This document shows, piece by piece, positions 11,892 through 64,000 of a stretch of 64,000 nucleotides of DNA. The translations under genes and the position numbers were made by a program. The stretch's first letter is position 1; each line of letters begins with the position of its first letter. The stretch covers positions 744,001 to 808,000 of the forward strand of contig OZ218965.1 in assembly GCA_965112735.1 (NCBI GenBank). The letters are read 5' to 3'. Source of the DNA: Phaeosaccion multiseriatum. Its lineage: Eukaryota > Protista > Ochrophyta, other classes. The notes below the pieces were generated by a model that ran no database searches, was not told the DNA's origin, and worked only from the letters and a program-made list of their open reading frames with translations.

Positions 11892-14800
11892 ATCCAGCAT
11901 GCACCATCCACCGTGCATAAGAATCTGCAAATCGTGGCGTGGGAGCATGTACGTTTGTTAGGTTATTGCAGCTTTTTGCTTTTTTTTGTTTAGTTTGTCT
12001 CCTGTTCTCTGCAAGGAGTGTGCATCCTGTCTTCAAGGTTTCTGCTGCCCTCATTGGTGTGTGTGCACCCAAGCCTTCGTTCCTTGACTTTCACCACAAA
12101 TCCCCTCTCCACCCTCCACCATGACTCATGACTAATGAAGCAAACACAACGGAGTAGCTGACCCTCCCTTCTGTGACCGTAGAGGAGCATCCGCGTTACC
12201 CACCCGCTTTCTGCTCTCTCGCGCGCTCTCTCTCGCGCCCCTCACCCGTCCATCCTCGTGCTGATTGGTGACTTACCTCCCTTTCTTCTTCTCCTTCCGA
12301 CCTCTGTCCTCCACTTTTGCTTCCACGATTCCCCACGCCGTCGCCAGGCCAGTGGGGTGCGAATCACCAAAGAGGAAGGCTTCGTCAAGCCTAGGTGGAG
12401 CAGGAAGCTGCTGGCCCGCTTGATGGAACTCGAACTGTACACGAACGAGCATGTCCGAGTCTGCTTCTTGGCATGTGCTGATCTACAACGTGCGTGCGTC
12501 TTGTTGGGAGAGGAGAGAGGGAGCTATTATAGTGGAGTACGTGCCGTTTGGAGGGCTAGGGGAGAGGAAATGGGGTTGGAAGGGGGGAGCGAACATGCTC
12601 CCTCCCCCCCCCTGGGACGAGAAAGACTGAGCGTAGGAAAGTCAAAGTCCCATGCCTCTTGAGTTCCACTCTCATCAAAAGTGCTTTCTGTGTTTGCACC
12701 CCTCCTCCTCTTCACTTATTCCTCCCCCTGCACTCCTACCACCACAGGGACCGAGGAAGCGGAGTTCATACTCCACCTGGGCAGCCAGCTGCCAGGGTCC
12801 TCTTTGTGTAGCGCGGATCAAACCCTTCACATGTGTGCCCGGGGCAATTTGAGGTATTTGCCGCTCCTCATTAACAGCGGCATAGTCGACCCTTTCACCT
12901 CGGTCGAGAACGATAAGCGCTTCACTCCACTCCTGTAAGTCCCTTACTGATGTCCCACTGCAATTCTTCCAATAATCTATGTCGACACTAGATATCGATC
13001 TCATATCGGTGTGCTTTGAAGTTGGCATACGCATTGCATTACACAAAGAATGGTCCACCCATGAACCCTTCCGCGGCCCACAGAAGGCCAAGCACACCCA
13101 ACCCCCCCTCCCTCTTCTCCCTCATTTTAGTATGAGAGGGAGGCACCTCGTCCATTCTTTTCTTCCGTCCGTGTTGTCGACAAGCGAGAGGCCCCTTTCT
13201 CTCTAATGCCCCCTTGTCTACTGCTGCTGCTGTTGCTGAATGACCAACTGCTACTGCTGCTGCTGCTGCTGTTGCTGCTGCTGAATGACCAACTGCTACT
13301 GCTACTGCTGCTGCTGGCTGTCAACATACGCACCACCCCTCCTTCCCTCTACGTACCACAGATACGCTTGCCTTATGGACTTCAAGAAGGAGGAGGATCG
13401 ACATCGCGTGTTGGAGATCATGCTCAAGCCGCCACCGCCAGGCCCAGACACCCCCAACGAGCCGCGAGCCTGGGCCATCAAGCGCAAAGTGGCAATTTTG
13501 AAAGTTATGGATGAGCTTGCCGAAAGGCTGGTCTTGAACCGGGTAAGTGTGAGTGTACGGTACTGCATGGGCGGACCAAGAGGGACGGACGGAGGCTGGG
13601 GGGGAGGGAAGGTCTGCGGTCCAGTGGATGCGGTATGTTGGGGCACCTCGTTGTGTCTGCCGGAGTCGAGACCGCAGTCAGCGAGGGCGATGAGTGATTT
13701 CTTGACTTACTGGGCACCGAAGCAATTCTGTGTACGAGAGAGAGAGAGAGCCTGTGATTGCCCCCCTTTGACCTCCCTCACGCTCGGCGGCTCCTGACAC
13801 CCTCCCTTTGTCTGTATCGCCTGAAACGCCTGAAACGCCCCTCCCTCCCTCCCTCCCTCCCTCCCTCCCTCCCTCCCTGCCGGCAGATGGAAACGCTTGT
13901 TGTGCTCGGCGGATGTTGCCCCAGCAGATTCATCTACCCCGTGCTGCGGGCAATGGTCAGTGGCTCACTTAGTCGATTTCGATTCGATTTCGAAAACTTC
14001 TGTGTATTACTCAATTTTTTTCTTTCATGTCTCCCCCTTCCTCCCATCCACTGCCATCCACCCACGTGCACTGCAAGCCCCTCATTCAGCCCCGTGTCAA
14101 GATGGCGGAGGTACGAAGCAGTCTGTGCAGGATCATCGATTTGGTGCACTCTCCTCCCGACACCCCTGGCTTGGGCGAGCCTGCCAACTGTGATGACTCT
14201 ACGATTCTACATGCCGCCATAAAAGCAGACGACGTTGATATCGTAAGTGGAGAAGCGAGGCACGATTCCACCCCTGGGACCACTCAGTAGGGAGGTGTTG
14301 TCTCCTCCTTTCAGACTTGCAGAGGACTTGAGGGGGGGGGGCGACTGACTGACACGCCATCGACCCTCGCCTCCCTTCTTTCGCGATGAAAGCAGAGGGG
14401 ACGGAGTACGGAGTGACAGTCCCTGCTTGACCACATCCGATGCTCAGGAAGCATTCTTTGCCCCTATTGCTTTGCTTTTGTCTCATCCTTCGCCCTCCTT
14501 CCCCTGCCCTCTCTTTTCCTGTGCCGCAAGATGAGGCACCTCCTCCCGAAACTGTCCAAGCAGCAGGTGGAGCATCGTTACGGGGATCAAAAAGTCTCCG
14601 TGCTGCACTTGGCGGTGGAGAATTGCTCTGCCGGGGTGCTGCAAGCTCTGCTGGAATTCGGCATCTCTGTCGATGAGCACAGTAAGTGAAACCTCCCTCC
14701 CCCCCCCCCCCCTTTCCGTCCCTGCCCCATCGCACACTGACTGACTGACTGACCCCCCTGCCTACCCCTCGGATATATGCCGCCGTAACCCCTGTAACCG

Positions 14801-25834: not shown

Positions 25835-25893
25835 TTAGGGTTAGGGTTAGGGTTAGGGTTAGGGTTAGGGTTAGGGTTAGGGTTAGGGTTAGG
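25835..25893 (+). repeat. Interstitial telomeric repeat (TTAGGG)9 + TTAGG
   Basis: Nine perfect TTAGGG units preceded by a T-rich tract (25800-25834). Confidence 0.97.
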
Positions 25894-27025: not shown

Positions 27026-30000
27026 GATGATTGAAAGGTGCTGATCTTGTTGGTGCTGCTCACCACGATGAGCTCGGAGCTCGGAGATGACGATGGAGCT
27101 CAAAGAGAGGGGGAGAGCGGCAAAGGCCGGCACAGGGGGAGAATGGTTAGGAGCGAAAGGGAGAGGAAGAGAGAGAGAGACTGATGGAGAGAGGCGAGAC
27201 CCGTCTACAGACTGGTGGAGAGAGGCGAGACGGCGCCGGTCTAGAGAGGCCCTGGGGGCTTGAGGACCGGCGTTGGCGTTAGCGTTAGCGTCAGCGCGTA
27301 CCTGGGGCTGAGAGAGTTGGAGTGCGTCGGGCTGGGGGGATCTATGGATATTGAGGGCGAGGCTGGGGCGGAGGAGAGACTGGCATATACATACATATCT
27401 ATATATATATATATATGAGCAGCTGGAGGCATATGGTGGTTGTGCTCATATGGTACTGCGGCGATACCCCTGATCTGCTGAGGGACTTTAGCAACGAGAT
27501 TGGCGTCTGCTGGCTGGGTATGTGGGGACGCTTGGCACGGTTGCACCTATCAGCGAGAGGCCGGCAGATGGCGACTGGGATGGAAGCGCTCCGGTGGTCC
27601 AAGGACGGAGCTGGAGCTGGGCCCGCGTGCGACAGCTGGTGCTACGCGAAGGTTGGTATGGCGACGCGTATCTGATGGGGTGGGTGTTGGTGATTAGTAG
27701 AGGCGTTCTGTTGGGTTGGTCTCTGTGCTACGTAGCTACCAGCGCCATGCTTATGGGGTAGTAGTTAGCGATGGGTGAGGCTGAGTGGTAGCTAAGGGGG
27801 CCTGTGGATGGGTGTAGCTCCCGTGACTAGGGTGACCTCACCTTGGGGGAAGGGCTGTGTATTTTCCTTTGTTGTGTTGTTTGTTCGGGTTGGATGCGTT
27901 TTTTTTTCGTGTCCAAGGCAGAGAGAGGCAGGTCTACCACAGTGGTGTTTGTCAGTGTGTGCTTCTGCAAGCTGCTGTGCGTCACCGCCCCCCTTTGGTG
28001 CGTTATCACACAGACGTCCTTACGCTTACGCTGCGTTGAAAGGAAAGATAGACTTGCCTTTGTCTGCGTCTCCGCTCCTCTCCTCTGTCCTAGCTGCTCC
28101 ATTTCCCCTACCTATCCTCCACCAACTTCTGTGAACGAATCAGCGACTCTGTGACACTCCTCCGTAAAGCTGCCTGTTTTTCTGATGCCCTCCCTCCCTC
28201 CCTCCCCTTCCCCCCCATTCTAGAGAAACACACGCTCTCTGGTACGAAGCTTATCAACACGGCCGTGAGCAGCCTTCATGGCAGTCATCTTCGGAGTCAA
28301 GCTCGCCTACGATGGCGTGGTGAGTGGGGGAGGGAACGATGGAGGGCGGGCGGGCGGGAGGGAGGGGAGGGAGGGAGGGAGGGAGGGAGGGAGGGAGAAA
28401 GAGAGCGCGTCCGTGAGTGAGTGAGTAAGCCAAACTGTACTGTAGGCCGAACTGTCATACAACACCGAAGGGGCATCAACAGAGGCCAAAACCCTTCCGT
28501 CTTGTCCGTGCCATTCAGTCCGGTCGTCCGAGCGCTCTCTCTAGACTGTCGCACACCCGATGTCATGTTTTGACTCCCATCCTCCCTCCCCTTGCGCCTC
28601 CAACTTGCTCCACTTCGAATCCGCTCAGCGTAAAGCGGTACCGCGACTCGGGGGCGGCTCTCATGCTGACTATGGCAATGAACGCCTTTATCCCTCACGC
28701 TGCCGTCAGCTTTAAGGCTACTCAGACTTAGAGGGTGAGTCGAGGAGGGAGGGGGGGAGGGAGGGTGTGGGCGGGTGCGTGGGTGCGTGCGTGCGTGCGT
28801 GCGTGAGTGCCCCGCTCCACGCAGACCTGAGTGCAGAGGGAAAAGAACACGCCGGTTTCACTAAGAAGCAGCGGCAGTAGGGCGGAGGGGGAGGGGGGGG
28901 CTTTCGTCGGCAAACCGAAGGGTGCAGAGAAGAGACCTTCCGCCCTGCTGCCTCCCGTCCCACCGAGAGGCTGTGACGATCTCCCTCTGCACCTGCCCGG
29001 CTCCCCCCTCGTCGGGCCCTGAGTTGTGTCCCCCGTCGGCAGCGGTCAGAAGGATGAGAGGTCGGGCCCGAATCATATCATGGATGACGACGACGTAGCA
29101 TGATTTCCGACGTGAAACCTAGACACTGACGGGCCTCTCTCTGCCCTCCTTTGTTTGGAGGTGCACTGCGTACTTTGTCGATTGTCTCGCAGAGAATGGT
29201 TCGTTCTACGTAACGGCATGTCGACCCACCTCTTCCCCCACCCCCACCCCTCTCCACCCTCCACCTCCCCCGCCCCCCACATACCCTTTTCTACTGACCT
29301 GACCCAATCCTGACCTGGCCTGCACTGGACTGGCCCGTCCCTCCCCTCGCCTCCGCATCTCACCCCTCTTGTCGCTCACTGCCACCGCCACTGCCACCGC
29401 CACTGCCACCTCCCCCGACACCACACTGGCAGGCTTGGCACGGTGTTCACTGTGTGCCTCATGGACAGCCCGGGCGGGCATGGCCATGTTGGTGCTGTCG
29501 TTTGCTGCCATCGCCTTGTTGGATGGAGAGAAGTTCATGTGCTTTCACATGTACCGCATCCTGCCGCAGTGCCCGAGTGATGTGATCCTGGGCCTGCTCA
29601 ACAGCACGCCCTTGTGCACATTTTTGAAGCTTCTGAAGAGGAGCACCCAGGTCAGTCTGAAACACGAACGTCACGTGACGCATACACACACCTTCCTGGT
29701 GCTGACCGGTGGGCTACATGCTCTACCCGTGTTGTGGACACCCGTCACCGCGGTGCATGATGGCTGCTCTTTTGCTTCTTCATCTCTTCATCTCTGTGTT
29801 TCCTGCATCCCTCTATCAATAGTTCTCTTTTCTCTCTCTCTCTCTTCGTGGCTGTGTTCGTGTATCTCCATCTGTTCCCCTCTCTCTGTCCCCCGCCCTT
29901 CCCGTCTCCTCTCACTTACCCCCTCTCTTCCCCCTCCTCCCTCCTCCTCCCTCCTCCTCCTCCTGCTGCTGCTGATGTTGCGTTCCCTTGGCGGGCACTT

Positions 30001-30725
30001 CTCTCTGGCCTCTTCCCCCCTCCCCCTCTGCTCGCTGCCCTCTCCTCCCTCTCTCTCTTTGACTCTGTGCTCGTGCGCTCTCTCTCTCTCCCTCTCTGTC
30101 CCGCTTCTTGCAGGAGGCCGCAAGCCTTCGAGGCGGCGCTCTTCACTGGGCCGCGGACAGCCACGCCACAATGTCAGCTCACAAGTACTGCCAAGTAAGT
30201 CAGAGAAGGAAGAGGAAACAGACCTCCTTCCTGTTTTGCTTTCGCTGCAGGAGGGACTCACTCACTCACTGGCTGTGGGGCGGAGAGGGTCACACACCTC
30301 CTGTCCGTGCGCTCTTGCCTTACCCTGTGCCCGCTAGTCGCGAATCAATGTGTGACGTTCTTTGTGGATCGATGACCTCACCTCCCCGCTGTGCCTACCC
30401 GACACCAGGCAAGCCCCCCAGCAGCACCGAGGGGGAAGGTGGTACGTGCACGAGCGAGATCATCCCGAGCTTGGCCGGCAGTGCAGATGCCCATACACTT
30501 CTCCCCAAAGAGAGCGCTGGGCTGGCTGGGCGGAGTGAGGGTGAGTCAGGGTGGTACTGCGAGGATGCGGCGCTTTACTCCTTTTGAAAGAGGGCTATAA
30601 TACTCTCTCCTCGTCCTGGTGCTGCTCGTGTCCTTGTGGACCATGTATGCTCCGTTGTTCGAAGCCCCCGCCCATGAGCACAGAATCAGGCTGTAAGTAG
30701 AAAGCAGAGGATGATGAGGCGAAGC

Positions 30726-30830
30726 ATGGCTGCTGTAGAGTTGGCGTTGGGCGTGGCGGGGGCCGTGTTGGGCGGATCTTCTCTCGTGCGCACTATCGTC
30801 AAGGAAAGATCAAAGACAAGATGGGTGGAG
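30726..30830 (+). pseudogene. N-terminal remnant of a paralog of the 26279 membrane-anchored ORF (second remnant at ~42108-42200)
   Basis: MAAVELALGVAGAVLGGSSLVRTIVKE aligns ungapped with MSTAQVVLGVVAIVLGVCSFAYTFHKD; similarity is lost afterwards. Confidence 0.55.
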
Positions 30831-31067
30831 CTCGAGGAGAACACTTTGAATTTGATTTATTTTTATTTGCCCGACCTATGTAACAAAACAATTGTTTGAG
30901 TTGCTTTTTTTGCTCCCCAAAGGGGCAAAATCCTGCTCGCTCAGCGCTCTAATCATATGCTTCGATGTACACGGCTACAGACCGATTTTTCCTCGGACCA
31001 ACTGCACCTCTACTGCCCACATGACCACAAGTCAGTCTCAAGGTACAACTGAAGCAGAGCAGCAGCA

Positions 31068-31290
31068 GCCCTCACCACTAGAGTAGGGCCCAAGGACAGA
31101 CGTCTCCCGCATTGGTATTGACCTACGAGGCGATGTCTTCTCCCACGGACAGCTCTACGTCGCCCTCTCCCGAGCCAAAGGCCACGACCGCTTCGTCGTC
31201 CATGTCCAGCTCTCGCGACTCTTGGACGGCGTCGCCCACACTGCCAATATTACATACCCTGCCTTTATTAACGCTGCTTTATCCCTATAG
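31068..31290 (+). mobile_element. Helitron RepHel (Pif1-type helicase) C-terminal remnant, copy 1
   Basis: With small frameshifts it reads ALTT..[29 protein letters not shown]...HTANITYPAFI*. This matches the Helitron helicase end [35 protein letters not shown]...TxNIVY. Confidence 0.85.
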
Positions 31291-31371
31291 AACTCTCCCT
31301 GTCTCGTCTGCCCCTCCTCCTTCATCCCCTCCACATCCTGCACTCGCCATTTGTGACTCCCTCCTAATTTG

Positions 31372-34300
31372 CTAATTTGCTTCTCCTTCCTCGCCTGCCC
31401 CGTTCACCTTTTTCTCCTCCACTCCATCTTCTTCTGCCAGTTCTTGCGAAGCCAACCCCTCTTCCCTCCTCCTCTTCCTTCCCCCTGCCGAGGGCGCAGC
31501 CCGAAGACCCGTCTTGTTCATCCTAATGATACCGTCAATGCGCTCCCTTACCTTCTCAACGTAATCAGCCTCATACTGCTGTTCCTCATACTCTTGGCCG
31601 GTTACGCTCGAAAGCTCACGCAGAAGCTCCTCCCAGGTCTTCGGCCAGTCTTTCTCCGGTTCATCTTCCTTTCTCCACGCGTCCCACTGCTCGCCGATCT
31701 CGGGATGAGCCTCGAGCAGCCGCTCCGTTCCGTTGTAGCAGTCCCCCGGGGTGAGTTTGTAGAAGAGGGGCACCACCAGGAAGTCCTCTTCATTCTTGAG
31801 CCTCTCCATGAAAATCTCTGTCTCCTTGAGGCACCACTCGCGGCAGAGGAACTGTGGGCTCAGCACCACCAATCCGATCTTGGCCTTCTTCGCCGCATTG
31901 ACCATGTAGTTGGGAGCTTGACCACCCAGTTGAAGATCCTCCCTATCCAGAAAGGCCGTTACACCGCTGTCCCACAGCGCCGCCCACAGGTTGTAGACAA
32001 GCCCCCACTTGTCCGGCCCGGCGTGGCTCAAAAAGACATCGAACTGCGCCGCGTCGTGCTGGGCATACTCGTTGCCGAGCAGCCCCAGCTCGGCCGCCAG
32101 GGGGTGCCGTCTACTTGCAATCGACTCCATGGATTCTTCAGGGGAAATGAAGGCTAAGCCCTTGAATCTCTCGTCCAGCATAGCTCCGATCCAATTGTGA
32201 ACCATCCCCCCAACCTCCCAACAGTTACTCTGGACGTCGCTCTTCACGAACAGCAGAAGATCTGCCCCTTCTACCATGACGAGAACGTCCACTTGGTTCA
32301 CCCGAAGCGCAGCGGCGTACTTGGCGCACCCGCGGATCTGGACGACCTTCTTGTGTGGCTCTTCGCTTCGCTTTCCCAGAAACCAGGCAAGCAAAAAGGG
32401 TAGCGTCCCAGACGGGAAATGAGCATTGCGCGCCTCGAAATGGCCTCGAGTACACTCCTCCGATTTCGCCTTGAGGAAAGTCATTAAGACCTCCCGCACC
32501 TCAGCATTGCCATCCCCCCCCAATCGGAGCCTCGTTGGGGCCACGTACACGTCCTTACGGCCCTCCTCGTCTTTGAGTCCGGTCACGGGCAGGATCACAC
32601 CGTGCTGAGCCAGTGTCTCCAGCATACCTTTGAAGAACCCCTTTTCCTCTTGGAGCCGCTGAAACGCCTTCTTCACTGGCTCACCTTCTTCGCAGGACGC
32701 AGCACCGACTTCGTGTCCCACGGACACCCAGAGCTGCCACAGGCAATATATGTACTCGGAAGAAGTCGTTGCTTTGGTCAGGAAGTTGCTCTCCTGCACG
32801 TGAAGAGCACGGAACGATGGAAGCTGTTCGTTGGTCCCAGTGTTGCTATACGCCATATCCTCAAGCATGTCGGCCCACAGTGTGTGTTTCACCGTGGCTT
32901 CCGTGAGTTTGTGGGAAGCAAGTGGCTTGACCAATGCCATCAGCCAAAGTGGGTTGACGTGCACATACCCCTCCAGCCACAGCACCGCTCCCACCGCCTC
33001 TTGCAATTTCAAGGCCAAGTCAAAAGTCTTCTTGGGGTCCTCTATGTCGAGTTCCTGAGCTCCCTCGGACTCCCTCCACTTGGCCTGCAGCTGCTTATCA
33101 CCAATGCACAGCTCGTCTTTGCACGCTTCTAGCGTGAGGCGTACAGTCACCCACGGAAGGGGTACCACCTTTCCCACATCCGGGAACAGCGTGCTGGGTG
33201 TGTCCTCTGTGCAGCCCTCCAACGCGAGCCTCTCAATGTACTCGCGAACATCCTGCACATCTTTGTCGGCTGTGAGATCCACAGCCAAGTAGTCCCCTTG
33301 CACCTTTAAAGGCTCTATGGTTCCAGCGCGTTTCTTGTGTGTCTTCAGAACTCTGTCCACTAGTTTCTGGACGTCACCCACTACTTTGTCAACGTCGCCC
33401 CCCTCCTGCTCCACGATATCAGCGTGAGATCCCAAAACAACCACAACACTGCCAGGCGCGTATACTTGCAGAGCATCGAGCCACTCAACGACCAAATCGC
33501 GTTCCGCTGTCTGCGATCCCCCGCTGAAGGCCTCGAGGTTAATGGTGAGTACGTACAAAGCCCCCTCAGTCAGACAGAGCTGGTGGTAGGCGTAGTAGTC
33601 TCGCTGACCCGCAAAGTCCCAAATCACCAATTTTAAAGGCCTACTCTCGTCCTTGCCCAGCGTTACTGCGTGCGTCTCGACGCCAATCGTCGACTCATCC
33701 TGTCCATCACGAAGATCCCTCTGTCCCCCCGTTAGCGATAGCGCCAAGGTCGTCTTCCCTGCCTTGTGCCGCCCCACCAGCACGACCTTCAGTTTCCACG
33801 ACCGCTCCTTGCCTTGACTCAGGTCGATCCAATACCGCTTCACTGCCTCAAGGCCGCGAGCCACCACATCGGTGCTGGGCGCTGTCCATGGATTGCCATG
33901 GAGGTATAGTGATTTTGAGAGCTTCTCCAGGCCTCTTGCTGCGTCAAGCGATATCTCTGAAAACGGGCAAGCAAGAAGGGAGACGATTTTCACTCTTGTC
34001 AGTATTTCAAGTCAAAGGGGCGAGGAAATTTCTTTAGTCACGCTGAGCTCCAGGCCAAAGGATGTGAACGGGGCTCGAGTACCACTCACCAGTGAGTTTA
34101 TTGTTGTTGAGGTCCAGTTCCTCAAGGTTCTGAAGACCTCCAAGCTCGGGTGGAATGCCCCCTGCGGATGGGAGGAGAGTTCTGTTGGTCACACTCATAT
34201 CAAGTGAAAGGGACGCGAACGGGTACGCGTACCACTTACCAGTGAGCTCGTTGCTTTGGAGGCGCAGATAAGTGAGCAGACCGAGACGTCCAAGCTCGGG

Positions 34301-37300
34301 TGGAATGCTCCCTGCGGATGGGACGAACGTTGTTTGGTCACAATCGTATCAAGTCAAAGGGACGCGAACGGGTGTGCTAACCACTCACCAGTGAGCTTAT
34401 TGTTGTTGAGGCAAAGTCCCTCAAGGTTCTCAAGATCTCCAAGCCAGGGTGGAATGCTCCCTGCGGATGGGAGGAAAGTTCTTTGGTCATACTTCCATCA
34501 AGTGAAAGGGACGCAAACGGTTCGCGTACCACTACCTTCCAGATTGTTCTCGTGGAGCCGCAGTTCTTGAAGGTTTGAAAGCTCTCTAAGTCGCGGAGGA
34601 ATACCCCCTGAGATGGGAAGAAAGCTCTTAGATCATACAAAAATCAAGTGAAAGGGACGCGAACGGGTACGCGTACCACGTACCGCTGAGCTGGTTGGTC
34701 CACAGTTTGAGCACCGTCAGGTTCTGCAGGCGCCCAAGCTCTGGTGGAATGATCCCTGCGGATGGGAGGAGAGTTCTTTGGTCACACTGATATCAAATCA
34801 AAGGGACACGAACGGTTTCACGTACCACTCACCAGTGAGCTTGTTGTTTTTGAGGTCCAGTCTCTCAAGGTTCTTAAGACCTCCAAGCTCTCTAGGAATG
34901 CTCCCTGCGGATGGGTGGAAAGTTCTTTGGTCACACTGATATCAAATCAAAGGGACACGAACGGTTTCACGTACCACTCACCAGTGAGCTTGTTGTTTTT
35001 GAGGTCCAGTCTCTCAAGGTTCTTAAGACCTCCAAGCTCTCTAGGAATGCTCCCTGCGGATGGGTGGAAAGTTCTTTGGTCACACTGATATCAAATCAAA
35101 GGGACACGAACGGTTTCACGTACCACTCACCAGTGAGCTTGTTGTTGTCGAGGTAAAGTCTCTCAAGGTTCCGAAGACCTCCAAGCTCTGGTGGAATCCT
35201 CCCTGCGGGTGGGAGGAGAGTTCTTTGGTCACACTGTGTAAGAAGGCATCCTTTTGCTAGGCTGGCAGCTATCCACTGAATACTCACGGGGGTAGCTGCC
35301 AGCCAAGCAAAAGGATGCCTTCTTACAACTGATATCAAGTCAAGGGGACGCGAACGCGTACGCGTACCACTCACCGGTGAGCTTGTTGTTGTCGAGGGCC
35401 AGTTTCTCAAGGTTCTGCAGACGCCCAAGCTCGGGTGGAATACTCCCTGCGGATGGAGGGTTCTTTGGTCACACTCATATCAAGTCAAGCGGACGCGAGA
35501 AAAGTTGGGCCACACTAATATCAAATCAAAGGGACACGAACGGTTTCACGTACCACTCACCAGTGAGCTTGTTGTCGTTGAGGTCCAGTCTCTCAAGGTT
35601 CTTAAGACCTCCAAGCTCTCTAGGAATGCTCCCTGTGGATGGGAGGAAAGTTCTTTGGTCATACTCATACCAAGTGAAAGGGACGCGAACAGGACCACTT
35701 ACCGCTGAGCTTACAACCATAACCACGGCCGAATCGCAAGGAGGACAATCCAACTGCACGTCCCACCATCTTTCTCACTGCGGAGCGGAGGAAAGTGCTT
35801 CGGTCACACTAATATTGAGTAAAGTGGACGCGAACGCGTACGCGTACCACTTACCCCTGAGCTCCTCGGACACCAGCTTGAGCACCGTCAGGTTCTCAAG
35901 ACTTCCAAGTTCGGGTGGAATGCTCCCTGCGGATGGGAGGAGAGTTCTGTGGTGATTAGGTGGCCCCAGGGAGTTAAACCATTATAAGCCCGTCCCTGGG
36001 GCCACATAATCACCACAGTTCTCTGGTCACACTAGTATCAAGTCAAGGGGACGCGAAAGGGTTCGCGTACCACCTACCTTTTAGATTGTTCCCGTTGACC
36101 CGAAGTTCTCGAAGGTTCCAAAGCTGTCCAAGTTGCGGCGGAATAGTCCCTGAGATGGGGGGAAAGCTCTTCAGCCCAACCAATATCAAGTCAAGGGGAC
36201 GCGAACGGGTACGCGTACCACTTACTTGTACCCTTGACCTGGGAGGGGTATGGTGGACCTCCGACGATGCGTACGGAAAAGGAGAGGCTCAGATACTCAA
36301 GCGTCTCCAGACTCCCAAGCTCCCTTGGAATGCTCCCTTCGGATAGAGGCGTAATGTTTGCAGTTTTGGGAGTTTCTCCAGGTCTCTTGCTACGTCAAGC
36401 GATATCTCTGGAAACGGGCAAGCAAGAAGGGAGACGATTTTGGCTCTTGTCAGTATTTCAAGTCAAAGGGACGCGAACGTTACAATGGGGCGAGGAAAGT
36501 TCTTTGGTCACGCTGAGCTCCAGGTCAAAGGATGTGAGCGGGTTCGCGTACCACGTACCAGTGAACTCGTTGAAGGCGAGGCTCAAATGCTCAAGCTTCT
36601 CCAGACTTCCAAGCTCCCTTGGAATGCTTCCTGCGGAGTGGAGGGAAGTTCTTTGTCTTACGACTATCAAACAAAGGGACGCGAACGGGTACGCGTACAC
36701 CTACCTTCTAGAGAGTTCCAATCCAGTTTAAGTTCTCGAAGCTCTGCTAGCTTCCCCAACTCCTTGGGAATGTTCCCTGTGGAGCAAGGAGAGTTCTCTG
36801 GTCACACTCATACCAAGTCAAAGGGACGCGAACGGGTGTGCGTACCACTTACCAGTGAGCCTGTTTTTATGGAGGCTCAAAAACTTCAGCTTCTCCAGAC
36901 TTCCAAGCTCGGGTGGAATGCTCCCTGCGGATGGGAGGAAAGTTCTTCAGCCATACTAATATCAAGTCAAAGGGACGCGAACGGGTATAGTTGAGATAAG
37001 TTTTTGAAGGTTCGAAAGCTGTCCAAGTTGCGGCGGAATAATCCCTGGGGTGGGGGGAAAGTTCTTCAGCCATACAAATATCAAGTCAAAGGGACGCGAA
37101 CGGGTGTGCGTACCACTTACCTTCTAGATTGTTGTTGATGAGCGTAAGTTCTCGAAGGTTTGACAGCTGTCCAAGTTGCGGCGGAATGTTCCCTGCGGAT
37201 GGAGGGAAAGTTCTTCAGCCCTACTAATATCAAGTCAAGAGGACGCGAAGAACGGGTTGCTCGACTACCACGTCATGCCGCTTCATCACATTTTTTTTGC

Positions 37301-39609: not shown

Positions 39610-42568
39610 CGGTAGAACTAGGACGTCCCGAAGCGCCACGCACGCAGGAGGCCTAGGAGGCCGCAAGGGGCCTCCTATCAACACGGCCGTCAGCAGCCTT
39701 CATCGCAGCCATCTTCGGAGTCAAGCTCGCCTACGACGACGTGGTGAGTGGGGGAGGGAACGATGGAGGGCGGGCGGGCGGGAGGGAGGGTGGGAGGGAG
39801 GGAGGGAGAAAGAGAGCGCGTCCGTGAGTGGGTGAGTAAGCCAAACTGTACTGTAGGCGAAACTGTCATGCAACACCGAAGGGGCATCAACAGAGACCAA
39901 AACCCTTCCGTCTTGTCCGTGCTATTCAGTCCGATCGTCCGAGCGCTCTCTCTAGACTGTCGCACACCCGATGTCATGTTTTGAGTCCCTTCCTCCCTCC
40001 CCTTCCCCTCCAACTTGCTGCACTTCGAATCCGCTCAGCGTAAGCGGTACCGCGAGTCGGGGGCGGCTCTCATGCTGACTATGGCAATGAACGCCTTTAT
40101 CCCTCACGCTGCCGTCAGCTTTAAGGCTACTCAAAACTTAGAGGGTGAGTCGAGGAGGGAGGGAGGGAGGGAGGGAGGGTGTGGGCGGGTGCGTGCGTGC
40201 GTGCGTGCGTGAGTGCCCCGCTCCACGCAGATCTGAGTGCAGAAGGGGAAAAACACGCCGGTTGCACTATGAAGCGGCGGCAGTAGGGCGGAGGGGTAGG
40301 GGGGGGCTTTCATCGGCAAACCGAAGGGTGCAGAGAAGAAACCTTCCGCCCTGCTGCCTCCCGTCCCACCGAGAGGCTGTGACGATCTCCCTCTGCACCT
40401 GCCCGGCTCCCCCCTCGCCGGGCCCTGAGTTGTGTCCCCCGTCGGCAGCGGTCAGAAGGATGAGAGGGCGGGCCCGAATCAAGTCATGGATGGCGACGAC
40501 GTAGCATAATTTCCGACGTGAAACTAGAAACTGACGGGCCTCTCTCTGCCCTCCTTTGTTTGGAGGTGCACTGCGTGCTTTGTCGATTGTCTCGCAGAGA
40601 ATGGTTCGCTCTACGTAACGGCATGTCGACCCACCTCTTCCCCCACCCCCCACCCCCTCTCCACCCTCCACCTCCCCCACCCCCCCCCATACCCTTTTCT
40701 ACTGACCTGACCCAATCCTGACCTGGCCTGCACTGGACTGGTCCGTCCGTCCCTCCCCTCGCCTCCGCATCTCACCCCTCTTGTCGCTCACTGCCACCGC
40801 CACTGCCACCTCCCCCGACACCACACTGGCAGGCTCGGCACGGTGTTCACTGTGTGCCTCATGTGCAGCCCGTGCATGCCCGTGTTGGTGCTGCCGTTTG
40901 CTGCCATCGCCTTCTTGGATGGAGAGAAGTTCGTGTGCCTTCACATGTACCGCATCCTGCCGCAGTGCCCGAGTGATGTGATCCTGGGCCTGCTCAACAG
41001 CATGCCCTCGTGTACATTTTCGAAGCTTGTGAGGAGGAGCACCCAGGTCAGTCTGAAACACGGAACGTCACGTGACGCATACACACACCCTCCTGGTGCT
41101 GGCTGCTGGGCTACATGCTCTACATGTGTTGTGGACACCCGTCACCGCGGTGCATGAGGGCTGCTCTTTTGCTTCTTCATCTCTTCATCTCTGTGTTTCC
41201 TGCATCCCTCTATCAATAGTTCTCTTTTCTCTCACTCTGCGTGGCTGTGTTTGTATCTCCATCTGTTCCCCTCTCTCTGTCCCCCGCCCTTCCCGTCTCC
41301 TCTCACTTACCCCCTCTCTCTCCTCCTCTCCCCTCCTCCTCCCTCCTCCTGCTGCTGCTGCTGCTGCTGCTGATGTTGCGTTCCCTTGGCTGGCACTTCT
41401 CTCTGGCCTCTTCCCCCCTCCCCCTCTGCTCGCTGCCCTCTCCTCCCTCTCTCTCTTTGACTCTGTGCTCGTGCGCGTTCTCTCTCTCTCTCTCTCTCTG
41501 TCCCGCTTCTTGCAGGAGGCCGCAAGCCATCGAGGCGGCGCTCTTCACTGGGCCGCGGACAGCCACGCCACAATGTCAGCTCGCAAGTACGTCAGAGAAG
41601 GAAGAGGAAACAGACCCTTTTTCTGTTTGCTTTCGCTGCAGGAGGGACTCACTCACTCACTGGCTGTGGCGTGCAGAGGGTCGCACTCCTCCTGTCCGTG
41701 CGCTCTTGCCTTGCCCTGTGCCCGCTAGTCGTGAATCAGTGTGACGTCTTTGTGGATCGATGACCTCACCTCCCCGCTGTGCCTACCCGACACCAGGCAA
41801 GCCCCCCAGCAGCACCGAGGGGGAAGGTGGTACGTGCACGAGCGAGATCATCCCGAGCTTGGCCGGCAGTGCAGATGCCCATACACCTCTCCCCAAAGAG
41901 AGCGCTGGGCTGGCTGGGCGGAGTGAGGGTGTATCAGGGTGGTACTGGGAGGATGCGGCGCTTGACTCCTTTTGAAAGAGGGCTATAATACTTTCTCCTC
42001 GTCCTGGTGCTGCTCGTGTCCTTGTGGACCATGTATGCTCCGTTGTTCGAAGCCCCCGCTCATGAGCACAGAATCAGGCTGTAAGTAGAAAGCAGAGGAA
42101 GAGGAGGTTGCAGAGTTGGCGTTGGGCGTGGCGGGGGCCGTGTTGAGCGGATCTTCTCTCTTGCGCACTCTCGTCAAGGACAAGACAGGACAAGACAAGA
42201 TGGGTGGAGCTCGAGGAGAAAACTTTGAATTTGATTTATTTTTATTTGCCCAACCTATGTACAATGTAACAAAACAATTGTTTGAGTTACCTATATGCCT
42301 CCAAAGGGGCAAAATGCTGCTCGCTCAGCGCTCTAACCATATGCTTCTATGTAGGCGGTTATTCATCTCGGACGGCTCTCCACCGCCTTTTCCTATAGGA
42401 CACCGGCTCCCTCGTACCTCCTCCAGCATGCTGGGCGCCCCCTTCGTGAGGGGAATTCCGCTTGAAGATGACTTTTCACCTGCTGCACCTCCCTCCGGGC
42501 TTGCATGTACTGCCCACATGGCTGACCACAAGTCAGTCTCAAGGCACAGCTGAAGCAGAGCAGCAGCA

Positions 42569-42792
42569 GCCCTCACCACTAGAGTAAGGCCCAAGGACAG
42601 ACGCTCTCCCGCATTGGTATTGACCTATGAGGCGATGTCTTCTCCCACGGAGAGCTCTACGTCGCCCTCTCCCGAGCCAAAGGCCACGACCACGTCGTCG
42701 TCCATGTCCAGCCCTCGCGCCTCTTGGACGGCGTCGCCCACACTGCCAATATTACATACCCTGCCTTTATTAACGCTGCTTTATCCTCATAG
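42569..42792 (+). mobile_element. Helitron RepHel C-terminal remnant, copy 2
   Basis: [31 protein letters not shown]...HTANITYPAFI; internal stop. Confidence 0.85.
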
Positions 42793-43051
42793 AACTCTCC
42801 CTGCCTCCTCTGCCCTCCCTCCTTCATCCCCTCCACATCCTGCACTCGCCATTTGTGACTCCCTCCTAATATGCTTCTCCTTCCTCGCCTGCCCTGTTAC
42901 GATATAAGGCATCCCACTATGCCTTCAGTAATATCCGAACGTGTCCCTTTCATCTTTTTCTCCTCCACTCCATCTTCTTCTCCCAGTTCTTGCGAAGCCC
43001 ATTCCTCTTCCCTCCTCCTCCTCCTCCTCCTCCTTCCCCCTTGTTCCTTGT

Positions 43052-46000
43052 TCATCCTATGATATCTTGAATGTGCTCCCTTACCTTCTCAACGTAATCA
43101 GCCTCATACTGCTGTTCCTCGTACTCCTTGCCGGTTTGATTCGAAAGCTCAGGCAGAAGCTTCTGCCAGGCCTCCGGCCAGCCTTTCTCCGGTTCATCTT
43201 TCTCCCTCCACTCGTCCCACTGCTTGTCTATCTCGGGATGAGCCTTGAGCAGCCGCTCCGTTCCGTCGTAGCAGTCGCCAGGGGTGAGTTTGTAGAAGAG
43301 GGGCACCACCAGGAAGTCCTCCTCTTTCTTCTCAAGCCTCTCCATGAAAATCTCTGTCTCCTTGAGGCACCACTCGCGGCAGAGGAACTGTGGGCTGAGC
43401 ACCACCAATCCGATCTTGGCCTTCTTCGCCGCACTGACCATGTAGTCGGGAGCTTGACGACCGAGTTGAAGATCCTCCCTATCCAGAAAGGCCGTTACAC
43501 CGCTGTCCCACAGCGCCACCCACAGGTTGTAGACAAGCCCCCACTTGTCCGGCCCGGCGTGGCTCAAAAAGACATCGAACTGCGCCGCGTCGTCCTTGGC
43601 ATACTCGTCGCCGAGCAGCCTCAGCTCGGCCGCCAGGGGTTGCCGTCCGCTTGCAATCGACTCCATGGATTCTTCAGGGGACATGAAGGCTAAGCCCTTG
43701 AACCTCTCGCCCAGCATCTCTCTGATCCAATTGCGAACCATCCCCCCAACCTCCCTACAGTTACTCTGGACGTCGCTCGTCACGTACAGCAGAAGATCTC
43801 CCCCTTCTACCATGATCAGAACGTCCAAGTGGTTCACCCGAAGCGCAGCGGCGTACTTGGCGCACGCGCGGATCTGGACGACCTTCTTGTGTGGCTCTTC
43901 GCTTCGCTTTCCCAGAAACCAGGCAAGCAAAAAGGGCAGCGTCCCAGACGGGAAATGAGCATTGCACGCCTTGAAATGGCCTCGAGTACACTCCTCCGAC
44001 TTCGCCTTGAGGAAAGTCGTAACGACCTTCCGTACATCAGTATTGCCACCCCCCCCCAATCGGAGCCTCGTTGGGGCCACGTACACGTCCTTACGGCCCT
44101 CCTCGTCTTTGAGTCCGGTCACGGGCAGGATCACACCGTGCTGAGCCAGTGTCTCGAGCATGCCTTTGAAGAACGTCGTGTCCTCTTCGAGCCGCTGAAA
44201 AGCCTTCTTCACTGGCACACCTTCTTCGCAGGACGCAGCACCGACTTGGTGTCCCACGGACACCCAGAGCTGCCACAGGCAAAAGAGATAGTCGGAAGAA
44301 GTCGTTGCTTTGTCCAGGAAGTTTCTCTCCTCCTCGTGAAGAATATCGAACGACGGGAGCTCCATAAGTTCGTTGGTCCCAGTGTTGCTATGCGCCATAT
44401 CCCCAAGCATGCTGCGCCACAGTGCGTGTTTCACCGTGGCTTCCGTGAGTTTGTGGGAAGCAAGTGGCTTGACCAATGCCATCAGCCAAAGTGGGTTGAC
44501 GTGCACATACCCCTCCAGCCACAGCACCGCTCCCACCGCCTCTTGCAATTTCAAGGCCACCTCAAAAGTCTTCTTGGGGTCCTCTATGTCGAGTTGCTCA
44601 GCTCCCTCGGACTTGCTCCACTTCTCCTGCAGCTTGTTATCACCAATGCACAGCTCGTCTTGGCACGCTTCTAGCGTGAGGCGTACCGTCACCCACGGGA
44701 GGGGCACCATCTTTCCCACATCCGGGAACAGCGTGCTGGGTGTCTCCTTGGTGCTGCCCTCCAACGCGAGCCACTCAATGTACTCGCGAACCTCCTGCAC
44801 ATCATTCTTGTCTGTGAGATCGACAGCCCAGTACTTCTCTTGCACCTTCAAAGGCTCTATGGTTCCAGCGCGTTTCCTATGTGTCTTCAGAACTCTGTCC
44901 ACTAGTTTCTTGACGTCACGCACTACTTTGTCAACGCCCCCCCGCCCCGGCTCCACGGTATCAACGTGAGATCCCAAAACAACCACAACACTGCCAGGCG
45001 CGTATGCTTGCAGAGCATCGAGCCACTCAATGACCAAATCGCGTTCCGCTGCCTGTGATCCCCCGCTGAAGGCCTCGAGGTTAATGGTGAGTACGTACAA
45101 CGCCCGCGCAGTCAGACAGAGCTGGTGGTAGGCGTAGTAGTCTCGCTGACCCGCAAAGTCCCAAATCACCAATTCCAAAGGCCTACTCTCGTCCTCCCCC
45201 AGCCTTACTGCGTGCGTCTCGATGCCAACCGTCGACTCATCCTGTCCAACAGCAGGATCCCTTTGTCTCCCCATTAGAGATAGCGCCAAGGTCGTCTTCC
45301 CTGCCTTGTGCCGCCCCACCAACACGACCTTGAGTTTCCACGACCGCTCCTCGCCTTGACTCAGGTCGATCCAATACCGCTCCACTGCCTCAAAGCCGAC
45401 AGCCACCACATCGGCGCTGGGTGCTGTCCAAGGATTGCCGTGGAGGTGTACTTGTAGTGTTTGCAATTTTGAGAGCTTCTGCAGGCCTCTTGCTGCGTCA
45501 AGCGATATCTCTGAAAACGGGCAAGCAAGAAGGGAGACGATTTTCACTCTTGTCAGTATTTCAAGTCAAAGGGGCGAGGAAAGTTCTTTAGTCACGCTGA
45601 GCTCCAGGCCAAAGGATGTGAACGGGGCTCGCGTACCACTCACCAGTGAGTTTATTGTTGATGAGGTCCAGTTCCTCAAGGTTCTGAAGACCTCCAAGCT
45701 CGTGTGGAATGCTCCCTGCGGATGGGTGGGAAGTTCTTGGTCACACTAGCATCAAGTGAAAGGGACGCGAACGGGTATGCGTACCACTCACCGGTGAGCT
45801 TGTTGTCGCCGAGGTGAAGAGAAGTCAGCTGGCTGAGACCTCCCAACTCCTTGGGAAGGTCCCCTGCGGATGGAAGGAGAGCTCTTTGGTCATACTAATA
45901 TCAAGTCAAAGGGACGCGAACGGGTTCGCGTACCACTCACCAGTGAGGTAATTGTTGTTGAGGAACAGTGTCTCAAGGTTCCGAAGACCTCCAAGCTCTG

Positions 46001-47063
46001 GTGGAATCTCCCCTGCGGATGGGAGGAGAGTTCTTTGGTCACACTCATATCAAGTCAAGGGGACGCGAACGGGTTCGCGCACCACCTACCTTCTAGATTG
46101 TTCCCGTGGAGCCAAAGTTCTCGAAGGTTCGGAAGCTGTCCAAGTTGCGGCGGAATGCTCCCTGAGATGTGGGGAAAGTTCTTCAGCCATACTAATATCA
46201 AGTCAAAGAGACGCGAACGGGTGTGCGTACCACTTACCGGAGAGCTCGGTGTGGAAGAGGTACAAAACCTCAAGCTTCTCCAGACTTCCAAGTTCGGCTG
46301 GAATGCTCCCTGCGGAGCGGAGGAAAGTTCTTTGATCATACTATTTTCAAGTCAAAGGGACGCGAACCACTTACCAGTGAGCTTGTTTGAACCGAGAATT
46401 AAGTGCTTAAGCTTCTCCAGACTTCCAAGCTCGGGCGGAATGCTTCCTGCGGAGCGGAGGAAAGTTCTTGGGTCAAGTGAAAGGGACGCGAACGGGTGTG
46501 CGTACCACTTACCAGTGAGCTTGTCGTCGTAGAGGTGCAGCTTTTGAAGGTTCTGCAGATCTCCAAGTTCGGGCGGAATGCTCCCTGCGGAGCGGAGGAA
46601 AGTTCTTTGGTCATACTGAGATCAAGTGAAAAGTCGAAGGTTTTGAAGCTGTTGCGGCGGAATGATCCCTGAGATGTGTGGGGAAAGTTTTTCAGCATAC
46701 TACAATGTAATATCAAGTGAAAGGGACGCGAACGGGTCGCTCGACTACCACGTCATGCCGCTTCATCACATTTTTTTTGCCCCGCTTTGCTTCGTCCTTC
46801 CCGAATATTCTAGACCCATCACATCGTTACTTTCTTCTTCCGTCTCTCTCACCTCTGAGGTTGTTCCAGCCCAGGTCGAGCTTCACAACATGGCCATTCT
46901 CTACGGTCACTCCGACCCAGTTCTCCAAAGATGCGTCAGTGTTCCATCCTTTCTTGTGATTCCAAGCGGGTCCGCTCGTGGCGTGAAAGAAGGCTGTGAG
47001 AGCTCTGCACTCCTCATGGTCAATATATGTTGTCTCCTCGGGGACGCTGTGCGACGAACCCAT
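43052..47063 (-). CDS. LRR-ROC-COR-TIR (ROCO family) immune-receptor-like protein, copy 2
   Basis: N-cap exon 47063-46853 (MGSSHS...ALTAFFHATSGPAWNHKKGWNTDASLENWVGVTVENGHVVKLDLGWNNLRG). Seven intact 72-nt LRR exons start at 46584, 46446, 46309, 46161, 46012, 45863 and 45715. Terminal exon 45510-43052 has ROC, COR and TIR motifs as in copy 1. Confidence 0.94.
45644..46740 (-). repeat. Array of LRR exon + conserved intron cassettes (gene 2)
   Basis: Same intron consensus as in gene 1; one broken cassette at ~46668-46630. Confidence 0.95.
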
Positions 47064-50047: not shown

Positions 50048-51907
50048 CTATCGTTCTTTCATCACCAACATGCCCGCCGTCTCCTCGTGCTTCTTCGCCC
50101 TGAGGTGGAGCTCATCGTTGATGTACGCCTGCAGATAGGGCAGCAGCACCCCGAAGCCGTCCTCGTTCCCCACCCCGCTGCCAGTGAGAATGTGCAGCCC
50201 TCCCCTTCCCTTGCCAATCTCGCCCTTCCTCCCCAGCCCCTCCACCTTCAACACGTGCCTAAGGGCCGCCTTGCCCGTCTCCTTGGTGAAGCCCTGCAAG
50301 TTCATGACCTTGCCCCGCCGGTCCCTCGCCCAATGCTCCAGCGCGCCTTCTCGGACCGCGTCTGCGTACAAACGGTCCTGAGCGGCCACCACCTCGTTCC
50401 GGCTCCGGCTCCAAGGTCCAGCTCCTGGAGCAGCAGGTGGTGGTACAGCATCCGCATCAGCAGCATGGGGCGCATCCCCATCGTCGTCAGGTGTTGGCGT
50501 ACCACCAATACCCGCCCCAAGGGCGTCAATGGCGGATCGATAGCACGAGTCGTTGGGCGGCACCCCCCTCAGCCGCATGTCTTCAAACACCTCCATTGCC
50601 GAGCTGATCTGACGGGCCTTGCAGCACGCCGTAATGACGGAGGAGTAAGTCATGAGGTTAGGGGCCACGCTCTGGTCAATCATGGCACGGAGCACCGCCA
50701 AGGCCTTCTCGTAGGCCCCGTTCTTGGCGCAGGCGGTGATGAGAGAGGTGAAGCTGATGATGTCTGGTCTGATGCCCTGCCGTACCATGTCATTCATAAC
50801 GCCAGCGGCTTGGGGTAGGTTGCCCACCCTCGCACAAGCGTCGAGAGCTGCATTGTAGGAGACGAGCGTGGGGTGGAAGCCTTGGGTCTTCATTTCATGC
50901 AAATACTCGAGCGCCTTGGTGTTGTCACCCGCCTTGCCACAGGCAGTGATGAGGGTGCTGTAGGTCACCACGTTGGGAGCAATCTGATTCTCTCTCATCT
51001 CGTTGAACACCATCAAGGCTCGCTTGTAGTCTCGGCCATTGCTGCACGCCTTCATCAGGCTGCCGTACGTCACCACGGTGGGGCGAAGGCCTTCCTGCTT
51101 CATGTCCGCAAGGAAGCCAAACGCTTCCTCCATGCGCCCCGCCCCACCCACAGCAGCAATGGCGGCATTGTAGGTAATCACATCAGGAGGTACTCCATTC
51201 GCTTTGGCCGCCCGGAGCAGGCCTGACACCTCGTCCCACCTCTTCTCCCAGCCCAAGGCCTGAATATCCTTGGTCAGGCTGATGCGCTTGTGCTTCAAGT
51301 TCCTGCCGCTACGAGTACCCCCATCTCCCGTCCTGACCTTTCCGTCCGCTGTTCGCGCCACTGGAGGGCCCCGATCCCGCCCTCGTCCGCCTCCCCTTCC
51401 TCCTCCTCCTCTTCCCCTGCCCCCTCTCCCACCACCTCTGGGTCCTCCACGACCACGACCCCCATCTTTCCCCCCCCGTGCCCCTCCCCGGCCGCCAGTC
51501 GCTCCAAACTCTCCCTGTATGTCCGCCTCCCACCCCTCCCACCCCGCGCTGCCGTACAATCTTCCTCTTCCTCCACCTCTTCCTCTCCGCCGGCTTCCTC
51601 CCAGTCGCGTCACCACCGCCCCTCCTTCTGCTTGTGCTGAGAGAAGGTGCGGCTGAGACCGCCGCCTTCTTCCCTCGTAGGCTGACATGGATGATGGAGA
51701 ACCCCACGTCTCGACGAGAGGCGATAGCACCAGATAGGGGTTGATCAGCCCCGAGGCATGGATAAAAGCCATCACGCCCTTTTCCTCCTCGCGTCGCCTT
51801 GCCTGACCTTGACGAACGTCTCCGCAACAGTTGCAATGGGCGCTGGGCGCTCTCTTCTCGCTCTTGAGCTGGAAAAGGAGTTGGGCGTCTTCAGATTTCA
51901 CTGGCAT
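50048..51907 (-). CDS. Pentatricopeptide-repeat protein with C-terminal SMR-like domain (start may be 51772)
   Basis: About 7 tandem 35-aa PPRs (PDVITYNAAIAAVGGAG, PTVVTYGSLMKAC, PNVVTYSTLITACGKAG...), an RGG-rich N-terminal region and SMR-like MNLQGFTKETG...LHILTGSG. Confidence 0.92.
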   Translation of the reverse strand: MPVKSEDAQLLFQLKSEKRAPSAHCNCCGDVRQGQARRREEEKGVMAFIHASGLINPYLVLSPLVETWGSPSSMSAYEGRRRRSQPHLLSAQAEGGAVVTRLGGSRRRGRGGGRGRLYGSAGWEGWEADIQGEFGATGGRGGARGGKDGGRGRGGPRGGGRGGRGRGGGGRGGGRGRDRGPPVARTADGKVRTGDGGTRSGRNLKHKRISLTKDIQALGWEKRWDEVSGLLRAAKANGVPPDVITYNAAIAAVGGAGRMEEAFGFLADMKQEGLRPTVVTYGSLMKACSNGRDYKRALMVFNEMRENQIAPNVVTYSTLITACGKAGDNTKALEYLHEMKTQGFHPTLVSYNAALDACARVGNLPQAAGVMNDMVRQGIRPDIISFTSLITACAKNGAYEKALAVLRAMIDQSVAPNLMTYSSVITACCKARQISSAMEVFEDMRLRGVPPNDSCYRSAIDALGAGIGGTPTPDDDGDAPHAADADAVPPPAAPGAGPWSRSRNEVVAAQDRLYADAVREGALEHWARDRRGKVMNLQGFTKETGKAALRHVLKVEGLGRKGEIGKGRGGLHILTGSGVGNEDGFGVLLPYLQAYINDELHLRAKKHEETAGMLVMKER

Positions 51908-56192: not shown

Positions 56193-64000
<7,808 letters not shown>

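Follow-up and report, generated by a model that had tools for sequence, protein, structure and literature searches.

A palindrome-like box beside the 5' splice sites of leucine-rich-repeat exons in the alga Phaeosaccion multiseriatum as a candidate signal of exon shuffling

Two paralogous, immune-receptor-like genes of the ochrophyte alga Phaeosaccion multiseriatum carry tandem arrays of leucine-rich-repeat (LRR) exons, and the introns between these exons share a box of about 23 nucleotides (nt) that follows straight after the donor. We examined this box in one window of the genome, a stretch of 64,000 nt (positions 744,001 to 808,000 of contig OZ218965.1, assembly GCA_965112735.1; positions below are those of the window), and in eight algal loci from Chrysoparadoxa and brown algae. 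We lean toward the view that the box is a boundary element of the LRR exon cassette that acts on DNA and not on RNA, and hence a candidate exon-shuffling signal. A point of DNA exchange in the box is supported by three independent lines of evidence, namely, a switch of linkage, a clustering of deletion joints, and the ends of cassette homology in Ectocarpus. The element is an imperfect palindrome in which perfect symmetry is rare. It is common to P. multiseriatum and Ectocarpus, and probably to Chrysoparadoxa.

Both genes (A and B) lie on the minus strand, and each combines an LRR-exon array with a large Roc-TIR exon (Table 1). All 23 intact 72-nt exons have GG as their first bases and G as their last, ahead of the GT of the donor; therefore, the introns split a glycine codon after its first base. 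This is phase 1 by the present count, whereas Teng et al. (PMC11378527) name the same phase 2. Exon and intron together give the period of 149 nt found with Tandem Repeats Finder. Read in RNA sense, the intron consists of the donor GTRAGT, GG, a 5' arm with the consensus ACGCG(T/A)AC, CC, the 3' arm GTTCGCGT, CC, CTTTGACTTGAT, and a pyrimidine-rich end. The box was found in all 25 array introns of the two genes. When up to three mismatches were allowed, the wider core AAAGGGACGCGAACGG occurred in 25 copies inside the two arrays, versus 0.57 expected, and only two weak matches, with three mismatches each, lay outside the arrays in the 64 kb. Viral contigs scanned with the box patterns yielded nothing.

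A preliminary description of this DNA, made from its letters alone, had reported a perfect 12-nt palindrome on the plus strand within 34200-34245. The strand reads as it was given there, and the 12-mer GGTACGCGTACC was confirmed at 34222-34233; its only other occurrences are at 34666-34677 and 36208-36219 (3 found, 0 expected). The same description placed a palindromic core beside every 5' splice site and took the 8-bp inverted repeat at 45914-45931 as the type for other cassettes. The shared box indeed adjoins every donor and that repeat is indeed perfect, but the palindromy was overstated: this is the only perfect 8-bp copy among the 25 introns, eight introns pair at 7/8 positions, and 16 pair at 6/8 or fewer. 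An ACGCGT centre was found in some window copies only. All copies descend from a single 149-nt repeat unit, and the symmetry of the consensus is therefore in effect one observation.

The introns were more similar to one another than the exons that they separate. Mean pairwise identity was 0.83 for whole introns, versus 0.64 for exons at all positions, 0.53 at third codon positions, and 0.55 at four-fold sites of shared codon families, and the intron was more similar than the exon in 163 of 171 cassette pairs. Intron identity remained flat (0.82-0.84) across exon identities from 0.50 to 0.79. The introns are thus a homogeneous family, decoupled from the exons. Within the introns, mean identity was 0.97 for GG plus T, 0.94 for the 3' arm, 0.91 for the six bases after it, and 0.73 for the 5' arm, so that the 3' arm is the best-conserved long segment and the 5' arm the least conserved part of the 5' half. 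Variability within the box is greatest at its centre. Many changes in the box are CpG transitions on either strand, the CpG observed/expected ratio of the window being 0.66.

The association of intron segments with the flanking exons was then compared by Mantel tests, used in place of Cramér's V for single columns, which was too noisy with 19 units. Intron positions 1-9 tracked the upstream exon (r 0.40, p 0.003), positions 28-41 (r 0.54, p 0.04) and 56-78 (r 0.51, p 0.0008) tracked the downstream exon, and positions 10-27 tracked neither. When the intron was cut at successive positions, the tie of the left part to the upstream exon was gone once the cut had passed about position 10, and the right part remained correlated with the downstream exon (r ~0.5) for cuts up to position 30. 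Since the intron is linked to the upstream exon only as far as the box and to the downstream exon only beyond it, the unit of inheritance changes within the box. The sample of 19 units is small, and part of the pattern could stem from recurrent CpG changes in the 5' arm. The preliminary description had suggested that intron 3' ends covary with the type of the next exon and that a mobile unit breaks within the intron. The first suggestion is confirmed by the tie of positions 56-78 and by the distribution of two end sequences, CATCTCAG, which precedes three of the four intact QLGQL/NNLE-type exons and one truncated exon of the same type, and CTCCGCAG, which precedes three of the four ELGSLEKL exons. 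The second is supported by the linkage switch together with the joints at the palindrome centre and the homology ends in Ectocarpus described below.

Every irregular intron was aligned to the consensus unit, and the joints of seven deletions could be read in this way. On the right, the deletions end at intron positions 16, 22, 19, 20, 17, 28, and 49, so that five of the seven ends surround the palindrome centre (18/19) within positions 16-22. On the left, they end at dispersed sites in an exon, the pyrimidine tract, the acceptor, and the donor. With the 7-nt window fixed, the probability of such clustering of right ends was 4e-6; corrected for 149 possible windows, it was 7e-4. Six of the seven deletions touched the box, and the 3' arm was retained in every relic.

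The third line of evidence comes from L022, a locus that lies upstream of a Roc gene in Ectocarpus sp. CCAP 1310/34. Of the 20 LRR exons in the first 8.6 kb of this locus, 13 share one strand and the remaining 7 occupy the opposite one, a mixed-strand arrangement described for Ectocarpus by Zambounis et al. (PMC3341825). Almost every inter-exon interval contained a 22-nt palindrome or a recognizable remnant of it; the type reads GGACGC-CAAC-G to the left of its centre and C-GTTG-GCGTCC to the right, or has GTAC replacing CAAC. The window box matches this palindrome at 19 of 23 positions (p ~5e-4), and the remaining intron is unalignable between the species. With at most one mismatch, the 3' arm of the window was found in 14 copies in L022 (0.71 expected), all within the LRR array. 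At 11 of the 13 switches of exon orientation, exactly one palindrome lay between the flanks. Copies of cassettes in inverted or direct orientation shared homology that ended in or beside palindromes (Table 1): 12 of 16 block ends were at most 10 nt from ACGCG/CGCGT (9.6% expected), and the other four abutted degenerate half-sites. Chimeric palindromes, joined from two half-site types, were present at 100-121 and 7795-7816, and they fit the view of the box as a cassette boundary because the half-sites would belong to different cassettes. The idea that the palindrome is the mere junction of head-to-head donor-side flanks was rejected as a general explanation, since it is present in head-to-tail intervals and the flanks are asymmetric beyond it.

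Looser palindrome forms were found at block ends in Ectocarpus sp. 6 (L025) and in Laminaria (L023). L025 also has a second palindrome type, GTCCTGCCAACG-N-CGTTGGCAGGAC, at 5575-5600 and 13384-13410, with the centre as in L022 and different outer arms. The density of ACGCG/CGCGT was 3.2-7.6 per kb in the brown-algal arrays of mixed orientation (L022, L025, and L023) and 1.5-2.6 per kb, close to expectation, in uniform arrays (L026, L028, and L029). A generic scan for the best palindrome in brown-algal introns gave values only slightly above shuffles outside L022, and the palindrome is therefore not claimed for every brown-algal LRR intron. The ROCO loci of Chrysoparadoxa (L020, L024, and L021) have 72-nt LRR exons, and their introns open with a donor, GG, and a related box that starts at intron position 7, as it does in the window. 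The window box matches that of Chrysoparadoxa family 1 at 17 of 25 positions (p 0.04), the match to family 2 is not significant, and the remaining intron is unalignable here, too.

A boundary element of this kind could work as follows. The cassette would comprise, in order, the 3' arm, the rest of the intron, the acceptor, the 72-nt exon, the donor, and the 5' arm; with a cassette running from arm to arm, each intron palindrome would therefore consist of two abutting half-sites of neighbouring cassettes. Breaks or strand exchanges would occur preferentially in or next to the palindrome centre, and half-sites from different introns would then rejoin, leading to the deletion, duplication, or inversion of cassettes. 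The product would be spliceable and in frame because joints in a phase-1 intron restore the donor, the box, and the acceptor, and joining in either orientation would rebuild the palindrome because both of its strands read alike. Frequent exchange would keep the introns alike, and selection would diversify the exons. We infer that the palindrome itself causes the breaks, via a hairpin-provoked lesion or a dedicated enzyme, and that exchange takes place in the germline on an evolutionary time scale.

Several findings weigh against this reading. The window arrays have the highest box density, yet they contain no inverted cassette and no reversed LRR exon, only deletions. The near-identical recent units A11-A13 fit ordinary unequal crossing-over anywhere in homologous introns. 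Arms of 8-11 bp are short for cruciform extrusion, and many copies are nearly without hairpin energy (-1.5 and -3.2 kcal/mol). The 5' arm varies freely and the 3' arm does not, an asymmetry to be expected of a one-sided element more than of a truly palindromic site. The deletion joints in the window number only seven, and the relics were recognized partly via the conserved motif. L026, L028, and L029, in which nearly all exons are on one strand, are without the box; therefore, the box is not needed to build or keep cassette arrays. Finally, a scan of ten large open reading frames of the window revealed neither a transposase nor a recombinase.

Four rivals were ranked after the proposal of a DNA-level boundary, in the order in which they are taken here. 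The first, which we consider unlikely but the best placed of the four, is that the box is a passive relic, a part of the ancestral unit that was conserved only through homogenization of the introns by unequal crossing-over or gene conversion and is palindromic by chance. All copies derive from one 149-nt unit, the conservation spans the whole intron and not the box alone, no covariation was found (see below), and the 5' arm decays freely, largely through CpG transitions; by a rough estimate, moreover, a 7/8 inverted repeat arises by chance in 77 nt about one time in four. However, a passive relic leaves unexplained the match to Ectocarpus amid an unalignable intron, the clustering of deletion ends at the centre, and the stopping of Ectocarpus cassette homology at palindromes.

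The preliminary description had also proposed an RNA stem that modulates donor use. In this case, a hairpin adjoining the 5' splice site would tune the donor and cause stochastic skipping of in-frame LRR exons, a role that would suit the start of the box at position 7 in both the window and Chrysoparadoxa and the alternative splicing of LRR exons reported in Ectocarpus (PMC11378527). A comparison of the window with Chrysoparadoxa shows changes of both partners in two inner stem pairs (G-C to C-G and A-U to G-C), and the paired fraction across species was 79.6%, versus 76.1% with shuffled pairing, a level reached by 1 of 500 shuffles. This signal was rated weak because Chrysoparadoxa family 2 breaks those inner pairs and because RNAalifold, run across species, gave no consensus structure and predicted no pairs. 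At 474-508 of L020 (Chrysoparadoxa australica, family 1), the complementarity of the box reaches into the donor (GTGGAC...GTCCAC), and the 5' splice site could therefore be sequestered in an RNA hairpin of ~15 bp, as counted by manual pairing (a 29-nt DNA fold gives 9 pairs). The 25 window introns, however, showed zero compensatory changes for both the 8-bp stem and the 12-mer palindrome. Their paired fractions, 80.7% and 74.1%, respectively, were the same as with shuffled partners, and 34 cells were pair breaking versus 10 that kept a wobble. Whole-intron RNA folds had no extra stability compared with shuffles (z-scores from -1.6 to +0.5), a scan against Rfam returned no family matching the box, and the local DNA hairpin was uneven among copies (-7.8 and -5.6 versus -1.5 and -3.2 kcal/mol). 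Two introns that have lost the 5' arm through deletions of 12 nt and 7 nt retain consensus splice sites, and the palindrome of L022 is 20-105 nt away from donors and borders cassettes of either strand. The RNA stem is thus not supported in the window, and we regard the hairpin as improbable, more so than a passive relic. As to the proposed stem itself, covariation was absent and conservation held for the 3' arm (0.94) but not for the 5' arm (0.73), whereas the breakdown of linkage at the box was present.

A sharper form of the boundary proposal would make the box a true recombination signal, the centre of which is cut by a dedicated enzyme for programmed and possibly somatic reshuffling of cassettes. 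The cassette would then be transposon-like, with the half-sites as its terminal inverted repeats, or the half-sites would be targeted by a site-specific recombinase. Inverted half-sites do flank each cassette, chimeric palindromes exist, and in several pairs homology stops at nucleotide resolution in the palindrome centre. Against this, no such enzyme was found in the ten large open reading frames scanned, no target-site duplications were seen, and the spacer varies by taxon (CC, CCCA, or none). Zambounis et al. (PMC3341825), who did not investigate the mechanism in depth, made initial observations without support for transposable elements and found no RAG genes in Ectocarpus; they also argue against plain homologous recombination as the cause of brown-algal LRR shuffling. 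We give both the programmed signal and its transposon- or recombinase-like version little credence, slightly less than the RNA hairpin.

The last rival, that the box is a binding site for a dimeric transcription factor and its 25 intronic copies act as an enhancer, is very improbable. The motif is palindromic, CG rich, and highly repeated in genes that are likely stress regulated, and its ACGCGT centre resembles MluI cell-cycle box and CGCG-box elements; however, that centre is confined to some window copies, it lies in the most variable part of the box, and the junction data would be left unexplained.

Table 1. Positions of the genes, boxes, and deletion joints in the window and of cassette copies in the Ectocarpus locus L022
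Feature	Sequence	Positions	Strand or orientation	Identity	Remarks
Gene A LRR array	Window	34090..37192	-		18 exons: 16 phase-1 LRR exons of 72 nt, one of 111 nt and one of 75 nt, both in frame; introns ~77 nt
Gene A large last exon	Window	31372..33993	-		Open reading frame; Roc GTPase (Pfam 9.7e-16), COR-like middle region, TIR (Pfam 5.2e-17)
Gene B LRR array	Window	45644..46584	-		7 exons of 72 nt each; introns 65-77 nt
Gene B Roc-TIR exon	Window	43052..45547	-		Paralogue of gene A
Box after exon A17	Window	34211..34233	-		Intron positions 7-29; GG, 5' arm, CC spacer, 3' arm GTTCGCGT, CC; perfect 12-mer at 34222-34233
Box after exon B5	Window	45912..45934	-		8-bp inverted repeat perfect, as in no other copy; hairpin as DNA -7.8 kcal/mol (z -3.2)
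Deletion joint	Window	36986..36990	-		Exon of QLGQL type, truncated at its position 56 and fused to intron position 16, within the box
Deletion joint, 114-nt intron	Window	35498..35499	-		Intron position ~63 of one unit to position 22 (3' arm) of the next
Deletion joint	Window	36479..36480	-		Acceptor region of one unit to position 19 (palindrome centre) of the next
12-nt deletion	Window	46367..46368	-		Exactly the 5' arm and spacer gone (intron positions 8-19)
7-nt deletion of 5' arm	Window	35693..35694	-		Intron positions 10-16
Deletion joint	Window	46634..46635	-		Truncated QLGQL-type exon to position 28, outer edge of the 3' arm
Cassette copies	L022	8200-8462 / 1636-1363	Inverted	~90%	Homology ends inside the palindrome on both sides
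Cassette copies	L022	8036-8202 / 2014-1848	Inverted	94%	Homology ends at or beside palindromes
Cassette copies	L022	99-354 / 3211-2956	Inverted	84%	Homology ends at or beside palindromes
Cassette copies	L022	7083-7308 / 7805-8026	Direct	89%	Homology ends at or beside palindromes

Genes A and B are 93.6% identical over ~3.9 kb downstream of the arrays, 3' flanking DNA included (30000-34089 versus 41500-45643). Despite these near-identical downstream parts, the arrays differ in size (18 versus 7 exons) and order. An attempt to map the array of gene B onto that of gene A by 40-nt windows was given up: because the introns are too alike, the best matches hopped and no breakpoints could be read, and only the last cassette was clearly orthologous. 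The Roc and TIR domains of gene A were matched by Pfam and COR was not; according to Teng et al. (PMC11378527), COR mostly escapes detection in their work, too. The closest protein in two very large searches was a ROCO-TIR protein of Chrysoparadoxa australica (36-39% identity), and a scan of metagenomes with the Roc-TIR protein found only loci that were 23-35% identical, none with the box.

Some units of the arrays are irregular. The intron after exon A4 (36337-36558) duplicates the terminal LRR intron together with some 70 nt from the start of the Roc exon, which suggests that gene A is a fusion of two arrays. Two exons of unusual length lie in frame between normal box introns: one of 111 nt (36226-36336), which is LRR-like at its start and non-LRR at its end, and one of 75 nt (35703-35777), which is not LRR-like. 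Truncated LRR exons are found inside introns at about 36990-37044 and 46635-46669. Two different hairpin insertions with terminal inverted repeats, of 95 nt (35236-35330) and 74 nt (35946-36019), interrupt LRR introns near positions 47 and 61, away from the box; they were the only matches in the Rfam scan, below threshold and as generic miRNA-like hairpins. An introner-type origin of the introns was considered and rejected, because they interrupt the same codon of every repeat and duplicate together with the exon. Elsewhere in the window, an interstitial TTAGGG run of 9.8 perfect units is present at 25835-25893, and the open reading frames at 50048-51907 and 56193-57761 encode a pentatricopeptide-repeat protein and a RING-finger protein, respectively.

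The system closest to these arrays is the shuffling of type I LRR exons in the ROCO genes of Ectocarpus (Zambounis et al. 2012, PMC3341825; Teng et al. 2024, PMC11378527). The window shares with it one 24-residue LRR per 72-nt exon, a symmetric intron phase, the LRR-Roc architecture, and recently duplicated genes with differing arrays; the truncated exons in the window introns may correspond to its inactivated exons. It differs from the Ectocarpus arrays as described in its introns of ~77 nt with a box at the donor, in the lack of reversed exons, and in a protein that ends in TIR. Intron palindromes, hairpins, or inverted repeats are brought up in neither of the two papers, and a full-text literature search beyond them found nothing relevant on the element.

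More distant systems resemble the arrays in part. Like the signal sequences of V(D)J recombination and of RAG/Transib, the box is a short conserved element with a palindromic part that flanks every receptor cassette, with joints at the element. V(D)J signals, however, are asymmetric, with a heptamer, spacer, and nonamer, and are used by a known enzyme in somatic cells, and no 12/23-type rule is shown for the box. Bacterial shufflons and invertases (R64 Rci/sfx; Hin, Gin, and Cin) also have short repeats between alternative coding segments, where exchange inverts or deletes segments and remodels a binding protein, but they are prokaryotic, lack introns, and depend on a defined tyrosine or serine recombinase and asymmetric core sites. 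Rearrangements provoked by palindromes, such as human palindromic AT-rich repeats and short inverted repeats cut by Mre11/SbcCD-type nucleases, likewise have breakpoints at centres, small centre-proximal deletions, and loss of one arm; the known fragile palindromes are much longer and are not retained as a repeated element at functional gene joints. The variable lymphocyte receptors of lampreys are also assembled from LRR cassettes recombined for receptor diversity, but by somatic copy choice from flanking cassettes via short coding homology and without intron palindromes. Introns with higher similarity than the silent sites in adjacent exons are known from major histocompatibility complex class I genes and plant R-gene clusters; there, however, alleles or paralogues are concerned and not tandem one-repeat exons, and no discrete conserved element is involved.

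The shuffling of LRR exons in the ROCO genes of brown algae has been known since 2012, and a discrete element offers a concrete handle on its mechanism. The box lies at the cassette boundaries, where the joints of deletions and inversions fall, and it can be mutated, used as bait for proteins, and employed to predict junctions. If it were indeed a signal cut by a dedicated enzyme, ochrophyte algae would have a receptor-diversifying system analogous to V(D)J recombination or shufflons, a possibility on which Zambounis et al. 2012 (PMC3341825) speculated. If it is only a fragile palindrome, it would still illustrate clearly how a small DNA structure has shaped receptor-family evolution.

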